From Histomonas meleagridis 2922-C6/04-290x (taxonomy: Eukaryota > Protista > Parabasalia): a stretch of 64,000 nt of DNA. The DNA is taken from the NCBI GenBank assembly GCA_020184695.1, contig JAANOX010000153.1, positions 682,001-746,000 on the forward strand. Reading direction: 5' to 3'. The notes under the pieces are model-generated. The model had not been told where the DNA came from. It was given only the letters and a program-made list of their open reading frames with translations, and ran no database searches. This document shows, in pieces, positions 28,503-58,540 of the stretch; position 1 is the stretch's first letter; each line of letters opens with the position of its first letter. Both the position numbers and the translations under genes were made by a program.

Positions 28503-29199
28503 CTAAATCTGAGAGATAAATTTTTCTTCTATAAAATCATCTGCAAATGGATTTTCTTCAATATTATTTGCTGTTGATACATTATGAAATGAGTTTTGGA
28601 TTTCAACATCATTTTGTTCGATATTTTCTGTCTCTTGTTCTTCACTTAAATGTTTCTTATGCTTGATTTTATTTAAAAGAATAACAAGTAATGTTATAAT
28701 TAGAATTGCAACGACTGCAGAGCAAACAGAAATGATAATTACATTTTGATTTTCATTTGTTTGAAATTCATTTGAATATAAAATTGTAAAGAAATAAGAA
28801 TAAATACTATAATAAGTCGAATAGCAAATGATTGTGTAATTATAATAAATGAATCCTGTTTCAATATATGTATGTGATGAATTAATATATGAAAATGTAT
28901 TTGAATTTATTTGTGAATAATAAATGATGATTTTTGTGTGATAGAATATAAATATGTTAAAGTGCTTATAAAAGTTAATGAAGAATTTATCAAAAATGAT
29001 TTGGTAAATGTATTTGTATGTATTCTTTGATTGTACATCCATCTTGAACCACTAATAATTCGATTCCATTTGCAATTGTTTGTGGAAATAATATCATTTT
29101 GCATTCGATATTTTTAGATGCTGATTTATATATACAGATATTTGTTATATCCCAATTAGTAAGTGGAACAGCATCATAATTGATATTCGTTGCATATCG
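28503..29199 (-). pseudogene. 5'-truncated, frameshifted paralogue of the fimbrillin-like surface protein 53424..55154
   Basis: NWDITNIC...IECKMILFPQTIANGI...IQI matches the intact gene at 29/49 residues; stalk remnant, transmembrane helix and NPFADDFIEE tail follow in different frames. Confidence 0.85.
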
Positions 29200-29712
29200 A
29201 TATGTTCAATGATTATCTTCAAAAAATTCAAGAAAAGGAAGAAGAAATAGGTAAAAACATTCTGAAAATCTTGAAAATATTAGGTGAATATAAATAATAA
29301 AGGTACCATAAATTTAGATAATTTTTTGTTTAAAAATATTCTTTAGAAATTATTTTGGATAGCATTAATGATTGCAACTGTAATATATCTTTTTTTCAAA
29401 ATCATAGTATTTTCACAAAAATGAAATAGAGCACAATGTACAATATTAAACAAAAAATCCTCTATACTTAGACTGATGGATCTATCATCTATCATCACCG
29501 AAACAATAAAATAAAATAAAAGAACCTCAGACAGAAGATAAAAACCGGTTGAATTTCATTGAAAACTTTTACGTCAAGTCAAATAACGGTGCTCACGGGC
29601 CACCCCAAATATGAGTTATTATTTCAATGGTTTTTATGCGGTTACTCCAACAAAATCAAACCGTCAGAACATCTTCTCAATTAACGTTACTCAAAATTTG
29701 AATAAATTGACC

Positions 29713-29718
29713 TCATTT
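29713..29718 (+). promoter_or_regulatory. Inr element TCATTT
   Basis: Lies just upstream of the ATG at 29725. Confidence 0.55.
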
Positions 29719-29724
29719 ATCAAT

Positions 29725-30690
29725 ATGCAGCTTCACCTCCGCGTTATAGAAGCCCAGGATATTGCTAAAATGGATGCCTACAAATCGGATCCTTATTGCG
29801 TAATCAACCTTACAAGCTCAAATGACACTCGTCGTACTCGTACTATCGAAAATACATTAAACCCAAGGTGGAATGAAGAATTCCATTTCAACGTACCAAA
29901 CCCAAGCATGTCAGCTCTTAAGATTCTAATGAGAGATAAGGATCTTATCAAAGATGATGACATGGCCACATTGGAAATTCAACTTTGTGCACTTCCTGTT
30001 GGTCAAGTCATTGATCAATGGTACAACATGATCCCAGTACGCCGTGTTAAGAAAGGTGGTCGTATTCATCTTGTTTTACATCTTGCACCAACCGGCGCTC
30101 CTCCATTCCAACCAACAGTAGCTCGTCCACCAATGCAAACACAGCCAATGATGCACCCACAACCCATGATGCAACAACCAATGATGGCACCACCAATGCA
30201 ACAGCCAATGATGCCACCTCCACAAAATCCAATGATGCCACCTCCACAAAATCCAATGATGCCACCTCCACAAAATCCAATGATGCCACCACGTCCAATG
30301 CCACCTCCACAACCGATGGCACCACCACCACAGCCAATGGCACCACCACCACAACCAATGATGCCACCACCACAGCCAATGGGACCTCCACCACCACGTC
30401 CAATGGGTCCACCACCTCCATATCCAATGGGTCCACCACCACCACCACAACCAATGGCACCACCTCCATATCCAATGGGACCACCTCCACCACGCCCAAT
30501 GATGCCACCACCAGCACCAGCGCCAGTTCAAGTTGGAGGATTTGTTCAAGTTGCTCCAGCTATGCAGCCAGTTATTATCCCGACACCACCACCTGGCGTT
30601 GCACTCCCACCACGTCCACTTGGTATGTCCGATAAGAAATACAGGAAGATGTGCAAGAAGTTCCTCAAGCACAATGGATATCGCTATTAA
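29725..30690 (+). CDS. C2-domain protein with a proline/methionine-rich (XYPPX-like) tail
   Basis: MQLHLRVIEAQDIAKMD..KSDPYC...TRTIENTLNPRWNEEF...DKD is a canonical C2 domain; Pro-rich repeats follow. Confidence 0.9.
   Translation: MQLHLRVIEAQDIAKMDAYKSDPYCVINLTSSNDTRRTRTIENTLNPRWNEEFHFNVPNPSMSALKILMRDKDLIKDDDMATLEIQLCALPVGQVIDQWYNMIPVRRVKKGGRIHLVLHLAPTGAPPFQPTVARPPMQTQPMMHPQPMMQQPMMAPPMQQPMMPPPQNPMMPPPQNPMMPPPQNPMMPPRPMPPPQPMAPPPQPMAPPPQPMMPPPQPMGPPPPRPMGPPPPYPMGPPPPPQPMAPPPYPMGPPPPRPMMPPPAPAPVQVGGFVQVAPAMQPVIIPTPPPGVALPPRPLGMSDKKYRKMCKKFLKHNGYRY
30208..30279 (+). repeat. Three exact 24-nt coding tandem repeats (MMPPPQNP) within a longer degenerate Pro-rich array
   Basis: ATGATGCCACCTCCACAAAATCCA x3. 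Confidence 0.9.
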
Positions 30691-30915
30691 GCTAAACAAG
30701 AAAAAAATTTTTAGTCAGTTTTGGTAAACATTAAATATCATTTACTCTCAAAATTTTTATTTTATTAATTTTGAATTATGTAAACCATTGAAATTCTGTG
30801 GAAATTGCAGCAAATTATTTAAATCGCAGAGCATAAGCTGAACCAAGAAACGCTTTTACGGATGTGATATCTTCATCTGTGCTAAAAAACATTTGAAATT
30901 TTAATCAAATTATAT

Positions 30916-51420: not shown

Positions 51421-52878
51421 TCAGATGGAATGATTTTTCATTGTTAAACTTGCTTCCTGGGAAGATTGAAGTAATTGTGCGATTTCATTATGTTCATACT
51501 TTAATGCATAGGTTAATGCAGTATTAAATAAATTAAAAAATCACCAAACGAAATAAATAAATAAATTGAAAATCATTAAAATTGACTTTGAACACAATAC
51601 ATAAACATCTTTTTCATCAATGTCAATTTCCTTTTGTTACCAGACATTGTTGCAGATATAAGTGGTGTTCGAAACGATTTAAATAATTTCCAAACATCAA
51701 ATTATTAAAATAAATATAAAATTAAATAAACAAATAGTTTTTGCATCAATATTAACTCCTTTTTGTTCAAGAACGTATTTAATAAGCTCAATATTTTTCG
51801 AATGTATGGCATTCAGTACAATATCATTTGGAATTGGATATTTTTGGAGAAAATATTTAACAAGATATAAGTTACCACCCATTACAGCGCTATTGATAAT
51901 CGGATCATCAATTTTTAAATAATTATCTTCCAAAAACGTAAGAATTTCATAATTCCCATTAGAGATACAGGAAGATCCCAATATATTTTCCCTTAATATT
52001 GGTGACCTTATATGTTGATAACTTTCAACCAAATTTTCCAATTTATTCTCAAAAAGATAACATTTTGATGGAATTTAATTGCTGCTTCATGCGCATTTGA
52101 ATGTTGAATGATTTTTTTCACATAAATGAATAATTTCTTCATTTCCACCAGCAACTGCGTATTTGCAAATTTGTATTTTTTAAATCAGAACCATTAATAA
52201 GTAAATATTTAAAACATTTAACTGCAGAAAAAAATGCTGCATAGTCAATTAATGTAACTTCCCATTGGTTAATAAAAGAACGTCTTTCATAAAGTGATGG
52301 CTTAATTTTTTGATTAAAATCAAAATCTTTTTGTGATGATATTTCTTGAAGTTTTTCAACATCATCATTTCGAATTATTTTCGAGATTTCACTTGGATTA
52401 TGTCCCTCTTCAATCAATCTTTTGTGGAGTTCCAATTGAAAGTTCTTCATAATTTTCCAAAAATTGATCGGAGCCAATCGTTCTTTTTTGATTTTCTTCT
52501 TCGGTTTGAAGGTGCGCAAAATGCTTTGAAGGAAATTTTTTGGTGATATTAGCTTCAATTAAATTTTGTTCAATCATTTTCTCAATTAAGTGTAAAGATT
52601 CTTGATCTGTATTATAGATACCGAACAAAAATTTCAATGATTTTTGTATAACTTTTGCTTTCTTCTTCTTTGGCTTGAATTACTTCCAAATATTTTAAAC
52701 ATGTATTAGCTGATGTTATTTGTGCAATAAATGCATGGTAAACTAAGATGGAAATTATGAGATTAAATAAATATGAACAATTAATATCGGATATTTTCAT
52801 GGTTTCTTGAACTGATAACTCAATATTTTCATCTTTTAGACTGAATATTACGTGTTCGAGTGTCTTGAGCACTTCCAT
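51421..52878 (-). pseudogene. Frameshifted DUF3447-ankyrin paralogue with two inserts (67 and 84 nt)
   Basis: Homologous to 46411..48825 but split into four or more ORFs by single-base indels; one ankyrin unit has an internal deletion near 51625. Confidence 0.85.
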
Positions 52879-53423: not shown

Positions 53424-55154
53424 CTAGATGCGTACACGATTATCTTCCATAAAATCATCTGCAAATGGGTCATCTAAAATATGATTCAATTTAGTTGCAG
53501 TGTAATCATTCGTTGTTTCAGTTTCTACTCCATATTCCGCGTCGACACTTTCGGCCATTTCTGTTTGCTGTATTTTGTTTCTTTGGTGACGAATATATAA
53601 AATGACAACTAAACATATGATCAGAACAACTACAACTATACATACGACTACGATTATTATTGTAGCTGTATTATTATTATTTTCGTATGTATTGTTGTCT
53701 ATTGGCATAATCATATAAAATTGTGAATATATTGGATAATACGTTGGATATTTAACAACAATATATTGATAAACTATGAGTAATGTGTTGGTATATGAAT
53801 AAGTTGAGTTATAATTCATTAATGTAAATGTATCAGATAACATCTGTGTCATACTATGAGTCTCTTCAAATACAATAGAATATGTTATAGTTATGGAATA
53901 CGTATATTGTTCATTAAACTTTAATGTTTCTGTAAATGTATTTGACATAGAAAATGTATATGAATTTGAAAATGTATTTGATATTGTAAATGTATTCGAT
54001 TCAGTAAATGTATGCGAAAATGTGTTTGATTCTGTGAATGTATTAGATAATGTAAATGTGTTTGAGTATGTATTTGATTGTGTGAACGTGTTTGATAAGG
54101 TAAATGTGTTAGAAAATGAATTCGATTTAGTGAATGTATTTGACTGAGTAAATGTATTTGACTGTGAAAACGTATTTGTATTTGAAAATGTATTTGATTG
54201 TGTAAAAGTATTCGAAAATGTATTTGATGATGTAAATGTATGAGAAAATGTATTTGACTTCGTAAAAGTTAAAGTTATCAAATCCATAGTAATATCGCAT
54301 TCATATATATAGCCAGAATCCAAAGAAGCAATTTGAATTACTTCATCTACAGAATGTCCATATCGGACAACAGATAACGTTATTCCATTTGCTAATTCTT
54401 GTGGAAATAATGTCATTTTACATTCAATGGTTTGAGATATTGTATTAGCAGTGCAAATATTTGTAATGTTCCAATTATTAATAATAGATGCATCTGAATT
54501 AACAGCCGCTCTTCCATCATTGTAATAATTTCCATCATGCTTTAAACCACTAATATATAAAGTATACTCTGAAAGCGTCTGTGATGTGATTTGTGTTGTG
54601 TCAAATTGAATTGTTAAATACAAACGAGCCATTTTCCGAGAAAGTGATACAGTTACTGTGTTTGTATTGGATTGAATTGTGCTTGATTGACCAAACATGA
54701 AATCTAAAGCTTTCATTGTTGCTTCGCCATTTTGACGTGTGTCAGTTATTAGTGCAGTAGGATAGAAGCAAGTAATAACATAATATGTCCCTCCAGAGAA
54801 AGTCACTCCTCCTGAAAACATACTATTTTTAAACAAACCATTTGAAGAAGAGGTATACCATACATTACCAGTAAAGGCTATACCATCACCTACAACATCT
54901 ACTCGCATTTGATCATTTGCTTCCCATTTACTATCTGTTGCAAGAGGTTTTCTTAAATGATTATTTAAAGGACGATCATTATTTGCCTGAAAAAATGCAT
55001 TAGAGAGTTTAGATGATTTGATGCTATTGCCAGACAATACTGACCAGCTTACATCAAATTGGGCAGATAAGCTTTGCATTTGAGATTTGTGATAAGATGA
55101 TTGAGACAATGCTTGTGCTAAAAACGGGAGAATCATTATTTTGACAAAAGTCAT
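53424..55154 (-). CDS. Type I membrane surface protein: signal peptide, fimbrillin-like domain, Ser/Thr-rich stalk, transmembrane helix, PFADDF tail
   Basis: Intact 576 aa ORF; motif order WEANDQMRV, NVWYT..G.F, CFYP, DFMFG, VSLSRKMARL, ISGL..DG, LFPQ, SGYIY resembles Bacteroidetes Mfa-like fimbrillins. Confidence 0.75.
   Translation of the reverse strand: MTFVKIMILPFLAQALSQSSYHKSQMQSLSAQFDVSWSVLSGNSIKSSKLSNAFFQANNDRPLNNHLRKPLATDSKWEANDQMRVDVVGDGIAFTGNVWYTSSSNGLFKNSMFSGGVTFSGGTYYVITCFYPTALITDTRQNGEATMKALDFMFGQSSTIQSNTNTVTVSLSRKMARLYLTIQFDTTQITSQTLSEYTLYISGLKHDGNYYNDGRAAVNSDASIINNWNITNICTANTISQTIECKMTLFPQELANGITLSVVRYGHSVDEVIQIASLDSGYIYECDITMDLITLTFTKSNTFSHTFTSSNTFSNTFTQSNTFSNTNTFSQSNTFTQSNTFTKSNSFSNTFTLSNTFTQSNTYSNTFTLSNTFTESNTFSHTFTESNTFTISNTFSNSYTFSMSNTFTETLKFNEQYTYSITITYSIVFEETHSMTQMLSDTFTLMNYNSTYSYTNTLLIVYQYIVVKYPTYYPIYSQFYMIMPIDNNTYENNNNTATIIIVVVCIVVVVLIICLVVILYIRHQRNKIQQTEMAESVDAEYGVETETTNDYTATKLNHILDDPFADDFMEDNRVRI
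53930..54270 (-). repeat. Coding tandem repeat of an 18-nt-like unit (SNTFT[Q/E/L/K])
   Basis: About 18 degenerate SNTF/SHTF hexapeptides. Confidence 0.9.
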
Positions 55155-55666: not shown

Positions 55667-56962
55667 CTAATTCCGTTTTTTGAAGTTTCTTGTTTTTATG
55701 CTCTGGTGGATGAAAAACAAGATGTATCCAACGAACTCTATGGCACATATTATTTCCAAAATGTAATCTTTCAAGAAATTCGATGAATTGCCAACTGCTT
55801 CATTTTTAACATTCTGTACAGCCTCCAGAACGTTGTCTATGTCAATATTTGGAACAACGGTTTTCTTGGCATAATTGATTGCATCAGATTTAATGTTGTT
55901 CATTTGGATAGCAATGTCATGGGCAATGTCAGTGAGGTTATACGAAGTTCTTTTCAATAGATCATTGACCATTCTTTTCATTTCTGGGAGCTCTTTTGAA
56001 ACAATCTTCGCGAACAATAAAATTGCTTGAAGTTGCATTCGTACCTTCGGTGCAAGTAAGGTGTTGATGGTTTCTGCTGATATTGAAAGCTTTGAACGAT
56101 TAACAGTTTCTCCAATCACAAAGAATGAATTGGAAAAATCTTCAGATGGACGCCGGTCGAATTTGCCATTGGATTTTTTGATCTTGTCGATGTATACCTT
56201 CGAGATTGGCATCAGCGCCAAGCGGCGTTGAGACTTTTTCTCTTTTTGCGTAAAGTATGCGTTTCTGAGATATTTGCGGTTTACGATAGAAGACTCATCG
56301 TTCGGCGGTTGTTGGGGTGGACTCAAAAGATCAACTTTAACATTGAAGAGGCGATTATCAGAACAGGTTTCATTGTTCGAAGCAAATAGCGAAAAGTATC
56401 CTTTTTCAACGAGATTTGAAATTTTGCTTGTTGTGCAAATTTTGTATTCTTTGCTATTTGTTGGTTTCGAATCAACAGTTATTGTGTCGTTAACTTTCTT
56501 AATACGAATTTGAGTTTTGCTGGTTGTGGAAATGTGACAAACTGGAGAAAGTGTAGATATTTTAATTGGATCTCCAGCTCCATTGATTAAATAAACATTG
56601 TTTCCTGGAATTCCTGGATTAATCCAAAGTGCTATACCGTGGAATCCAAGTAATTCTTCTGTGCATAATTCTTGTGTGTAAAAGAAAAGAAATCCATTAC
56701 CACTTTTAGCAGTTGAAATTATTTCAGCTTCAAAAACCCAATTCTTTGCGTAAGTTGGGAGTCTTTGACAAATTCCACCACTTACATAAGGATATTTTAA
56801 TGTCATTTGAAGATAATTTTTAATATTGATACAAGAACCCCTGAGAGACCAATTTCCAATTTCATTATTTCCATTATCAGTAAATATGAATGGTGGAACT
56901 AAGCTATAATTTAATGAAAGAGAATAAGTAATGAAGCAGAATAAAACAAAGTTCATATGCAA
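55667..56962 (-). CDS. L-type lectin cargo receptor (ERGIC-53/VIP36-like)
   Basis: Signal peptide, NWSLRGS, G.GF.FFYT..., F.GIALWI, GYFSLFAS, coiled coil, C-terminal transmembrane helix and KKxx (KKRN) end. Confidence 0.8.
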   Translation of the reverse strand: MHMNFVLFCFITYSLSLNYSLVPPFIFTDNGNNEIGNWSLRGSCINIKNYLQMTLKYPYVSGGICQRLPTYAKNWVFEAEIISTAKSGNGFLFFYTQELCTEELLGFHGIALWINPGIPGNNVYLINGAGDPIKISTLSPVCHISTTSKTQIRIKKVNDTITVDSKPTNSKEYKICTTSKISNLVEKGYFSLFASNNETCSDNRLFNVKVDLLSPPQQPPNDESSIVNRKYLRNAYFTQKEKKSQRRLALMPISKVYIDKIKKSNGKFDRRPSEDFSNSFFVIGETVNRSKLSISAETINTLLAPKVRMQLQAILLFAKIVSKELPEMKRMVNDLLKRTSYNLTDIAHDIAIQMNNIKSDAINYAKKTVVPNIDIDNVLEAVQNVKNEAVGNSSNFLKDYILEIICAIEFVGYILFFIHQSIKTRNFKKRN

Positions 56963-57439: not shown

Positions 57440-58540
57440 ATGGCGTACAGAACCAACGATATAGAGCGAATCGATAAACATGTACTACAAAGATACGAAG
57501 TGCTCCACAAAATTGGCAAGGGAGCATATGGCGTTGTATGGAAAGTTATGGACAAAGTTACCCACAACATTGTTGCTTTGAAAAAAATTTTTGGCGCATT
57601 TCGTAATGCAACAGATGCGCAAAGAACATACCGCGAAATAACCTTTTTAAGGCAAGTTACACCACACCCTAATATTGTCAATATTCTTAATGTATACAAA
57701 GCTGTTAATAATCTTGACTTATATGTCATTTTTGAACTTTTAGAAAGTGACGTTCATAGTGTTATTCGAGCCAACATCTTACAAGATGTTCATAAGCGTT
57801 ACATTACATATCAACTTCTTGTTGCCATTAAATACCTTCATTCTCGACATCTTATCCATCGAGACCTCAAGCCATCCAATCTCTTAATCAACTCAGACTC
57901 ATCAGTTAAGCTTTGTGATTTTGGATTAGCCCGAACATTATCAGAAGGGAATATTGGACAAGCAGTTCTCACTGAGTATGTTTCCACCCGTTGGTACAGA
58001 GCCCCTGAGCTTATTATAGGTTCTAATAACTACAACGAGGGCGTTGACATGTGGGCAATAGGTTGCATTGTTGCCGAGCTCTATAGCGGGCGACCGTTAT
58101 TTCCGGGCACATCCACACTTGATCAAATGGAGAAAGTTGTAGCACTTACAGGGCCTCCTAGTCAATCAGACATCAAATCCATGCGATCTGACTTTGCCGA
58201 AACAATGATATCAAATCTCACATATACACAACCTCATATAACACTCCATCAGAAGCTTCCATTAGCCGACGCAGACACAATAGACTTCATTCAGAAGCTT
58301 CTTGTGTTTAACCCAGACTTAAGAATGAATGTTGAACAAGCAATTAATCACCCATTTGTGGCACAGTTTAGAAACCCAGAGCTGGAAGCGCTCACTGGCG
58401 AACCAATAAAGCTCAGCTTATCAGACAATAAGAGATACATGGTGAAAGACTACAGAAACAGACTTTACCACGAAGTGTTGACCAAACTAACTGGAGAACC
58501 AGCACACTTACCAGAAAAAGTGCCATCAACATACCATTAG
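57440..58540 (+). CDS. MAP kinase, ERK7/MAPK15-like
   Basis: GKGAYGVVWK, FRNATDAQRTYREI, HRDLKPSN and TEY activation loop. Confidence 0.9.
   Translation: MAYRTNDIERIDKHVLQRYEVLHKIGKGAYGVVWKVMDKVTHNIVALKKIFGAFRNATDAQRTYREITFLRQVTPHPNIVNILNVYKAVNNLDLYVIFELLESDVHSVIRANILQDVHKRYITYQLLVAIKYLHSRHLIHRDLKPSNLLINSDSSVKLCDFGLARTLSEGNIGQAVLTEYVSTRWYRAPELIIGSNNYNEGVDMWAIGCIVAELYSGRPLFPGTSTLDQMEKVVALTGPPSQSDIKSMRSDFAETMISNLTYTQPHITLHQKLPLADADTIDFIQKLLVFNPDLRMNVEQAINHPFVAQFRNPELEALTGEPIKLSLSDNKRYMVKDYRNRLYHEVLTKLTGEPAHLPEKVPSTYH

Follow-up and report, generated by a model that had tools for sequence, protein, structure and literature searches.

We examined a gene on the minus strand at positions 53424-55154 of a 64,000-nucleotide stretch of the Histomonas meleagridis 2922-C6/04-290x genome (contig JAANOX010000153.1, positions 682,001 to 746,000; the whole stretch is hereafter called the window) and found that its product bears an extracellular head homologous to the subunits of Bacteroidales type V pili, with their two-beta-sandwich fold. 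This fimbrillin-like head is followed by a repeat stalk, a transmembrane (TM) helix, and a short cytoplasmic tail. H. meleagridis uses the same C-terminal module for BspA-like, immunoglobulin (Ig)-like, and glycosidase-headed proteins. The gene itself belongs to the eukaryotic genome, to whose composition it has become fully adapted. As the best explanation, we regard it as quite probable that H. meleagridis makes a type I membrane protein for its surface, in which a captured pilin head sits on a parasite chassis. A first-pass annotation of the window had proposed such a graft from the nucleotide sequence, and the parts it listed (signal peptide, beta-rich domain, repeats, linker, TM helix, and PFADDF tail) were all borne out on the intact open reading frame (ORF). 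The modules are as follows.

53424..55154, minus strand: complete coding sequence, 576 codons plus stop, from the ORF list and translation; alternative start at Met7 (nt 55136)
55104..55154, minus strand: signal peptide, residues 1-17, with the core ILPFLAQAL and an end in AQALS at about residue 17, as read from the sequence
54942..55103, minus strand: polar N-terminal pre-region, residues 18-71, with a candidate beta1 strand and a Ser/Asn/basic loop
54264..54941, minus strand: Mfa_like_1 fimbrillin-like head, residues 72-297, from Pfam, phmmer, AlphaFold, and Foldseek
53895..54263, minus strand: stalk of SNTF[ST]-type hexapeptides, residues 298-420, from Tandem Repeats Finder and motif counts
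53664..53894, minus strand: Tyr/Thr/Ile-rich juxtamembrane linker, residues 421-497, from composition, with low-confidence beta-hairpins in the model
53592..53663, minus strand: single TM helix, residues ~498-521, from a Kyte-Doolittle peak of 4.07 and an AlphaFold helix
53427..53591, minus strand: acidic cytoplasmic tail of 55 residues, 522-576, with DPFADDF found by pattern

The head is a type V pilin domain

The ORF is uninterrupted and contains no internal stop, and a length of 576 codons in DNA of ~30% guanine plus cytosine (GC) is far beyond chance. Its true start may be Met7, since two metagenomic relatives described below, P0001 and P0002, both begin at the counterpart of this residue and the ESM Atlas record of the protein starts at residue 7. 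According to hydropathy, Pfam, and the structural model, the product consists of an N-terminal signal peptide, a head of a bacterial family, a single C-terminal TM domain, and a short tail.

The profile comparison that the first-pass annotation had named as a check matched residues 72-297 to the Pfam family Mfa_like_1 (PF13149, "Fimbrillin-like") with an E value of 1.2e-16 and 61.9 bits (gathering cut-off, 27), covering profile positions 3-238 of 246. No other fimbrillin family, nor any other domain, scored in this Pfam scan of the protein. When phmmer was run against the sequences of the Protein Data Bank (PDB), the sole match was 3ufi, BACOVA_04980 of Bacteroides ovatus (E value, 4e-8). An exhaustive phmmer search with residues 40-300 against 1.84 billion cluster representatives returned nine matches, of which two had the protist architecture and seven were bacterial proteins with a lipoprotein signal and a lipobox cysteine. 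Word-index protein searches, made with region 1-300 and with the head alone, gave no matches; because they missed P0001 too, this blank reflects low sensitivity and not absence.

The alignment of the head with its relatives has 12 invariant columns, including W77, D81, P132, D151, M175, G203, G208, G214, P251, Q252, and Y284. The conserved motifs map to W..GD, AYYP, DF(L/M)F, H.M.RL, SG..H.G...G, a further W, FPQ, and Y.Y, and the order of fimbrillin motifs that the first-pass annotation had listed was thereby found again in the bacterial relatives.

The head was modeled with AlphaFold from residues 18-320 and an alignment of 42 sequences. The resulting model is all-beta, with a predicted template modeling score (pTM) of 0.74 and a predicted local distance difference test (pLDDT) of 60-95 over residues ~72 to ~310. 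Its best 33 Foldseek matches in the PDB were all Bacteroidales structures of the type V pilin superfamily, led by 4k4k (E value, 2.4e-12; target TM-score, 0.69), then 3ufi, 3sy6, 4h40, and 3t2l, with Porphyromonas gingivalis Mfa2, Mfa4, Mfa3, and FimA further down, so that the structural comparison that had been called for also pointed to the type V pilin superfamily. Likewise, the structural neighbors of the protein's own model in the ESM Atlas were only Bacteroidota Mfa_like_1 clusters. A literature search by PDB entry and locus tag yielded no useful classification of the nearest PDB entries as tip, stalk, or anchor subunits.

The gene resides in the H. meleagridis genome

Apart from the protist-type sequences, the head's relatives are exclusively bacterial, as bacterial contamination, or an assembly chimera of a Bacteroidales gene with protist DNA, would predict. 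Such an origin is extremely improbable, and we rejected it on composition and linkage. The H. meleagridis genome has a GC content of 28.7% (PMC8529796). At third codon positions (GC3), the value is 0.21 for the gene and 0.19 for the head alone, i.e., host-like throughout, compared to 0.13-0.39 for eight neighboring genes and 0.30-0.75 for the bacterial relatives. In addition, the signal peptide has no lipobox, the single ORF runs on from the head into a protist-specific chassis, and a frame-shifted sister copy lies inside the same window. Eukaryotic genes flank the gene on both sides in a contig of 3.38 Mb, with an ERGIC-53-type lectin gene directly upstream; the genes of the window encode SMC, Nipped-B, Tudor-SN, a protein kinase, an ankyrin-RhoGEF protein, and DUF3447 ankyrins. 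Contigs from public DNA runs agree with the locus with zero mismatches, and one of them spans the lectin gene mismatch-free, reaching from position 54932 within the head to past position 57600.

Two other regions of the window were recorded in the course of this analysis. At 52000-52373, the summed depth of DNA-run contigs was 310,000-876,000, compared to ~627 for single-copy sequence, and this piece of a DUF3447-type ankyrin gene therefore belongs to a repeat whose copies number at least in the hundreds. In a plus-strand ORF at 29611-30690, the C-terminal two thirds contain a long repeat rich in Pro, Met, and Gln (PPPQPM-type units), and the long opposite-strand ORFs at 30047-30699 look like mirror artifacts of this repeat.

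Stalk, TM helix, and tail form a shared chassis

According to Tandem Repeats Finder, the stalk has a period of 18 nt and comprises 18.6 copies (53931-54241). Thirteen units fit the loose pattern [SN][NS][TS][FY][ST], and additional (H/N)TFT variants are present, so the earlier estimate of about 18 SNTFT repeats was a fair one. The repeat is rich in Thr, Ser, Asn, and Phe and has no proline, and the whole protein contains four N-x-S/T sequons. In the full-length AlphaFold model, residues 296-492 are without confident structure (pLDDT, 24-42; stalk, 25-35). Judging from this composition, the stalk could plausibly be an extended, probably O-glycosylated Thr/Ser-rich spacer. In this region, 126 nt at 54091-54218, or seven hexapeptide units, are missing from contigs of one DNA run, at depth 696, and of one putative RNA run, at depth 4, with 12 other letters in between; the skip is either a repeat-length variant or else a paralogue or an assembly collapse.

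The linker that follows holds 12 Tyr and 12 Thr in 77 residues. The full-length model places a helix at residues 496-538 (pLDDT, 75-81) and leaves the tail disordered. Near the end of the tail, DPFADDF (residues 562-568, nt 53451-53471) includes two motifs of the adaptor-binding type, DxF (DPF) and FxDxF (FADDF).

A profile built from three full-length protist-type sequences was then used to search for this chassis. In H. meleagridis, it matched proteins annotated as LRR_5 (BspA-like), "bacterial Ig-like domain", "Ig domain-containing", and "cellulase family glycosylhydrolase", and it also matched a Pmp-like protein of Tritrichomonas foetus. All of these matches were restricted to the C-terminal 20-47% of the query, and SNTF-type units, the Tyr-rich linker, and the TM helix all recurred in the C-termini of the other-headed proteins. 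Two classes of tail were distinguished among them (P0038-P0061), one with ...[DN]PFA[DK]DF...I, as in the fimbrillin-headed gene, and one ending in ...ED[DEN][QNK]W[LIM]. The motif [DN]PFA[DAK]DF is kept in P0001, in the decayed copy described below, and in BspA-like- and Ig-like-headed proteins. Of the earlier phrase "protist mucin-like stalk", the graft onto a protist chassis is thus supported, since the same stalk, TM helix, and tail bear unrelated heads in the same genome; the label mucin-like is not established for a repeat that has no proline and is modeled as low-confidence disorder.

The pilin's own C-terminal strand reads S-x-T-I-T, and we considered that the SNTF[ST] stalk may have been born by amplification of this strand. 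Because the same repeat carries unrelated heads, the resemblance may instead represent micro-homology at the fusion point.

The arrangement is comparable to that of surface proteins of the BspA-like and Pmp-like kinds in trichomonads (Noel et al. 2010, PMC2843621), in which a bacterial-type head, thought to be laterally acquired, is combined with a eukaryotic TM domain and a tail that is short and acidic. In trichomonad BspA and Pmp proteins, the prokaryotic C-terminal parts have been swapped for a TM domain and endocytic motifs, DxF and FxDxF being among those screened in the tails, and heads equipped in this way increase adhesion (Handrich et al. 2019, PMC6701047). These tails share endocytic motifs, DxF and FxDxF for instance, with the fimbrillin-headed protein. 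The two systems differ in their heads, which are leucine-rich repeats or beta-helices in trichomonad BspA and Pmp and a pilin fold here. They also differ in that adhesion has been assayed for BspA and Pmp, whereas the fimbrillin-headed protein is known here from its sequence and model.

A pilin homologue that is not a canonical pilus subunit

Type V pilins are exported as lipoproteins and held by an N-terminal anchor strand, and they polymerize by inserting the free C-terminal donor strands of each subunit into the groove of the one that follows. Type V pili have been called exclusive to Bacteroidia, their assembly needs an Arg-specific protease cut in the beta1-beta2 loop, and a free C-terminus is essential in Mfa1 (PMC13655056).

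At the N-terminus of the fimbrillin-headed protein, the lipobox is absent, whereas its cysteine is present in the bacterial relatives whose match reaches this end. The signal peptide is of the eukaryotic type, and no cysteine is found ahead of residue 128. A eukaryotic signal peptide has thus taken the place of the lipoprotein signal of the bacterial proteins. Two candidates for the beta1 ("anchor") strand were found in the pre-region, SNAFFQAN and DVSWSV, the bacterial counterpart being VAAxVxAxI. Depending on whether beta1 is taken from the MAFFT alignment or from the DVSWSV strand of the model, the beta1-beta2 loop is ~6 or ~26 residues longer than in bacteria.

At the other end, ITLTF and SNTFSHTF are the counterparts of the bacterial terminal strands GLxV and SxTIxxW, and the first stalk unit is modeled as the last beta-strand of the head (residues 296-307; block-mean pLDDT, 75-87). 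This terminal strand is internal, being followed by ~270 further residues that include the TM helix. Canonical pilus polymerization is therefore unlikely, because the donor-strand position runs on into the stalk. With a C-terminal strand that is not free and a TM helix of its own to hold it, the protein most likely acts as a single displayed head and not as a polymerizing pilin. Nor is there a fimbrial operon at the locus, where the neighbors are the ERGIC-53-like lectin, kinase, and ankyrin genes. Overall, the protein is a pilin homologue but not a canonical pilus subunit: it has the fold and matches the profile, and it lacks the lipoprotein signal, the free donor strand, and the operon.

Compared to the Bacteroidales Mfa_like_1 pilins BACUNI_00621 (4k4k) and BACOVA_04980 (3ufi), the head belongs to the same family and shares the fold and the core motifs, W..GD.IG and SG..H.G.F among them; P. 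gingivalis Mfa2, Mfa3, Mfa4, and FimA are more distant. A basic residue between beta1, for which the protist protein has a candidate strand, and the conserved Trp is another point of resemblance to the Bacteroidales type V pilins. Unlike them, the protein is eukaryotic and has neither a lipid anchor nor an operon, its head runs on into a ~200-residue stalk, a TM helix, and a cytoplasmic tail, and its identity to the bacterial proteins is about 20-32%. In bacteria, many Mfa_like_1 modules lie N-terminal to Fib_succ_major domains, peptidases, nucleases, carbohydrate-binding modules, or a pectinesterase, and since they so often precede cargo domains, Mfa_like_1 already serves as a display or attachment piece there. 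The gene for one bacterial relative, P0004, adjoins a second Mfa_like_1 gene.

The conserved basic residue raises the question of whether pilin-type strand exchange has been retained. In such a scenario, a Lys/Arg-specific protease of bacteria or of the parasite would cut the beta1-beta2 loop and free the groove, which would then take a donor strand from Bacteroidales type V pilins or from another protist copy. We consider this quite unlikely. The protein and P0001 both have a beta1-like strand and an R-K pair before the invariant Trp (R69-K70 at nt 54945-54950, lying 9 and 8 residues before it, with the same spacing in P0001), and [TS][RK] occurs 6-9 residues before this Trp in all bacterial relatives whose match reaches the loop, which is the loop on whose cleavage the pilus mechanism depends (PMC13655056). 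The loop is also extended, polar, and predicted to be disordered, hence accessible, and the bacterial modules that precede cargo domains resemble tip or adaptor pilins, which accept a strand without donating one. However, P0002 has no basic residue before the invariant Trp, so that retention is seen in two sequences only, the N-terminal region is poorly modeled, and the C-terminus that must be free in the Mfa1 donor is fused here to the further residues of the stalk, linker, helix, and tail.

A more specific form of strand exchange, to which we give an even slimmer chance, is that groove and loop have been kept for use on bacteria, with Arg/Lys-specific proteases in the cecum opening the groove and the head locking onto the donor strands of Bacteroidales type V pili. 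Bacteria would thereby be tethered to a receptor whose DPF/FxDxF tail would feed them into endocytosis. If true, a stolen pilus subunit would serve as a prey-capture or microbiota-docking device and would offer a molecular handle on the dependence of the parasite on bacteria.

Relatives, a decayed second copy, and the origin of the head

The closest relative, P0001, comprises 559 residues, is 43% identical overall, and has every module, including DPFAADF near the C-terminus; it derives from a 2-kb ENA metagenome contig with 31% GC. P0002, from another short ENA metagenome contig, is 327 residues long and consists of the head and the first stalk units, after which it ends. No further relative was detected when JGI metagenomes were scanned with the protist alignment, leaving these two short ENA contigs as the sole sources of protist-type relatives. 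Conservation of architecture and tail motif with P0001 at only 43% identity implies long-term purifying selection.

The window itself holds a second copy in decay.

28503..29200, minus strand: decayed second copy, ~25 kb from the intact gene, from three-frame translation, BLASTP, and the ORF list

One frame of this copy contains a remnant of the C-terminal half of the head (...NWDITNIC...CKMILFPQ...), a second contains one HTNTFT unit, and a third contains an open remainder of 179 residues with the Tyr-rich linker, the TM helix, and an NPFADDF tail. BLASTP aligned this remainder with the C-terminal part of the intact gene at 35% identity (E value, 4e-10). A further gene of the same genome, g8743.t1 (490 aa), carries the label "fimbrillin family protein" in Table S2 of Palmieri et al. 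2021 (PMC8529796). This different gene, labeled by Blast2GO only, has predicted TM segments near the C-terminus and is presumably a paralogue, the comparison being one of label and TM position only.

A genome locus search with a bacterial-only alignment gave 42 hits, each of them either from gut Bacteroidales or from a bin into which Bacteroidales sequence had most likely strayed. Among the latter, Mfa_like_1 genes near-identical to those of Segatella/Prevotella appeared in Senegalimassilia, Lachnospiraceae, and Agathobaculum bins (L024, L031, and L044), most likely through binning contamination and not through transfer to Actinomycetota or Bacillota. A maximum-likelihood tree was inferred from the three protist-type heads and 39 Bacteroidales sequences of the Muribaculaceae, Prevotellaceae, Bacteroidaceae, Porphyromonadaceae, Odoribacteraceae, and Rikenellaceae. 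The protist-type heads formed one clade (support, 100/98) on a stem of 1.37, which joins an unresolved Bacteroidales polytomy. The lateral origin from gut Bacteroidetes that had been proposed earlier is supported in that all non-protist relatives belong to gut Bacteroidales and the protist sequences form a single clade. In the simplest reading, a gut Bacteroidales bacterium would have passed the head to the histomonad lineage in one old transfer. Amelioration and fusion to the chassis would have come next, along with duplications that built a small family in which genes occasionally died.

A diverging, multi-copy family with gene birth and death is also what would be expected for immune-exposed proteins, and heads of this type are abundant as surface antigens of the gut Bacteroidales that live beside the parasite. 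The head could accordingly be seen as molecular mimicry or camouflage, a Bacteroidales-like antigen that lets the parasite blend into the cecal microbiota or diverts host antibody. Shared epitopes are unlikely, however, at an identity to the bacterial relatives of about 20-25%, and there is no sign of expression switching, which makes mimicry very unlikely.

Expression, annotation, and points against the surface protein

For expression, we relied on three 2023 runs guessed to be RNA, which were available as contigs only and cannot show silence. In all three, the neighboring lectin gene was represented by gene-sized contigs at a depth of 73-202; this gene (55667-56962, minus strand), which encodes a legume-lectin-like membrane protein of the ERGIC-53/VIP36 type, is therefore probably well expressed. 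Stalk pieces of higher depth were also found in the putative RNA runs, and since they carry 5-14 mismatches, they belong to paralogues. With respect to annotation, g5042 (570 aa, "bacterial Ig-like domain protein", Table S2) was tried as the gene starting at Met7 and was rejected because its TM positions do not fit.

Several points weigh against a functional surface protein with a captured head. Contigs matching the gene exactly had a depth of 2-14, compared to 3-5 for nearby intergenic sequence, so that these runs do not demonstrate transcription. The 576-aa and 570-aa translations are absent from a collection of 15 billion proteins in which the neighboring kinase and M20 peptidase are present, and it therefore seems that exactly this gene model is missing from the deposited annotation. 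The N-terminal 55 residues and the whole stalk were modeled at low confidence (pre-region pLDDT, 32-57), and a basic residue is kept in the beta1-beta2 loop, so some pilin-type strand exchange may survive. Finally, the protist stem of the tree is long and joins a polytomy from which no donor family stands out.

Coverage near the intergenic background in the putative RNA runs, a clearly decayed paralogue 25 kb away, and the lack of the exact gene model in public protein sets would all suit an untranscribed or decaying relic of the transfer with no present function. Such a relic seems unlikely, as 576 codons of AT-rich DNA pass without a break in the frame, no module is damaged, and purifying selection is implied by P0001. 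Moreover, the runs consist of contigs from few samples, which limits what their low coverage can say.

Proposed function and significance

As a type I surface protein, the gene product would cross the membrane once and display the pilin-fold head well away from it. Bacteria, mucus, or host cells probably carry the ligand to which the head binds, and the probable task of the tail is to link the protein to endocytosis or recycling through adaptors. We infer this role as an adhesin or endocytic receptor from the analogous tip and adhesin modules of bacterial fimbriae and from BspA and Pmp of trichomonads.

Our literature search found no paper on a type V pilin domain in a eukaryote or on a fimbrillin head in a protist. 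The only trace was the automatic "fimbrillin family protein" label of g8743.t1 in Table S2 of PMC8529796, whose main text does not mention fimbrillins. A bacterial head on a parabasalid TM domain and tail is already known from BspA and Pmp.

H. meleagridis is a gut parasite of poultry and the agent of blackhead disease, and it needs bacteria for growth; we know of no licensed treatment. The type V pilin represents a third bacterial adhesin fold, beside BspA and Pmp, that parabasalids have refitted onto their own anchor and sorting tail, with heads plugged into a reusable chassis at the stalk repeat. For pilus biology, it is a natural experiment in which the pilin fold has long been kept with no lipidation, no operon, and no free donor strand. 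For the parasite, this fimbria-derived surface family is a candidate for mediating contact with the microbiota or the host and a possible antigen.

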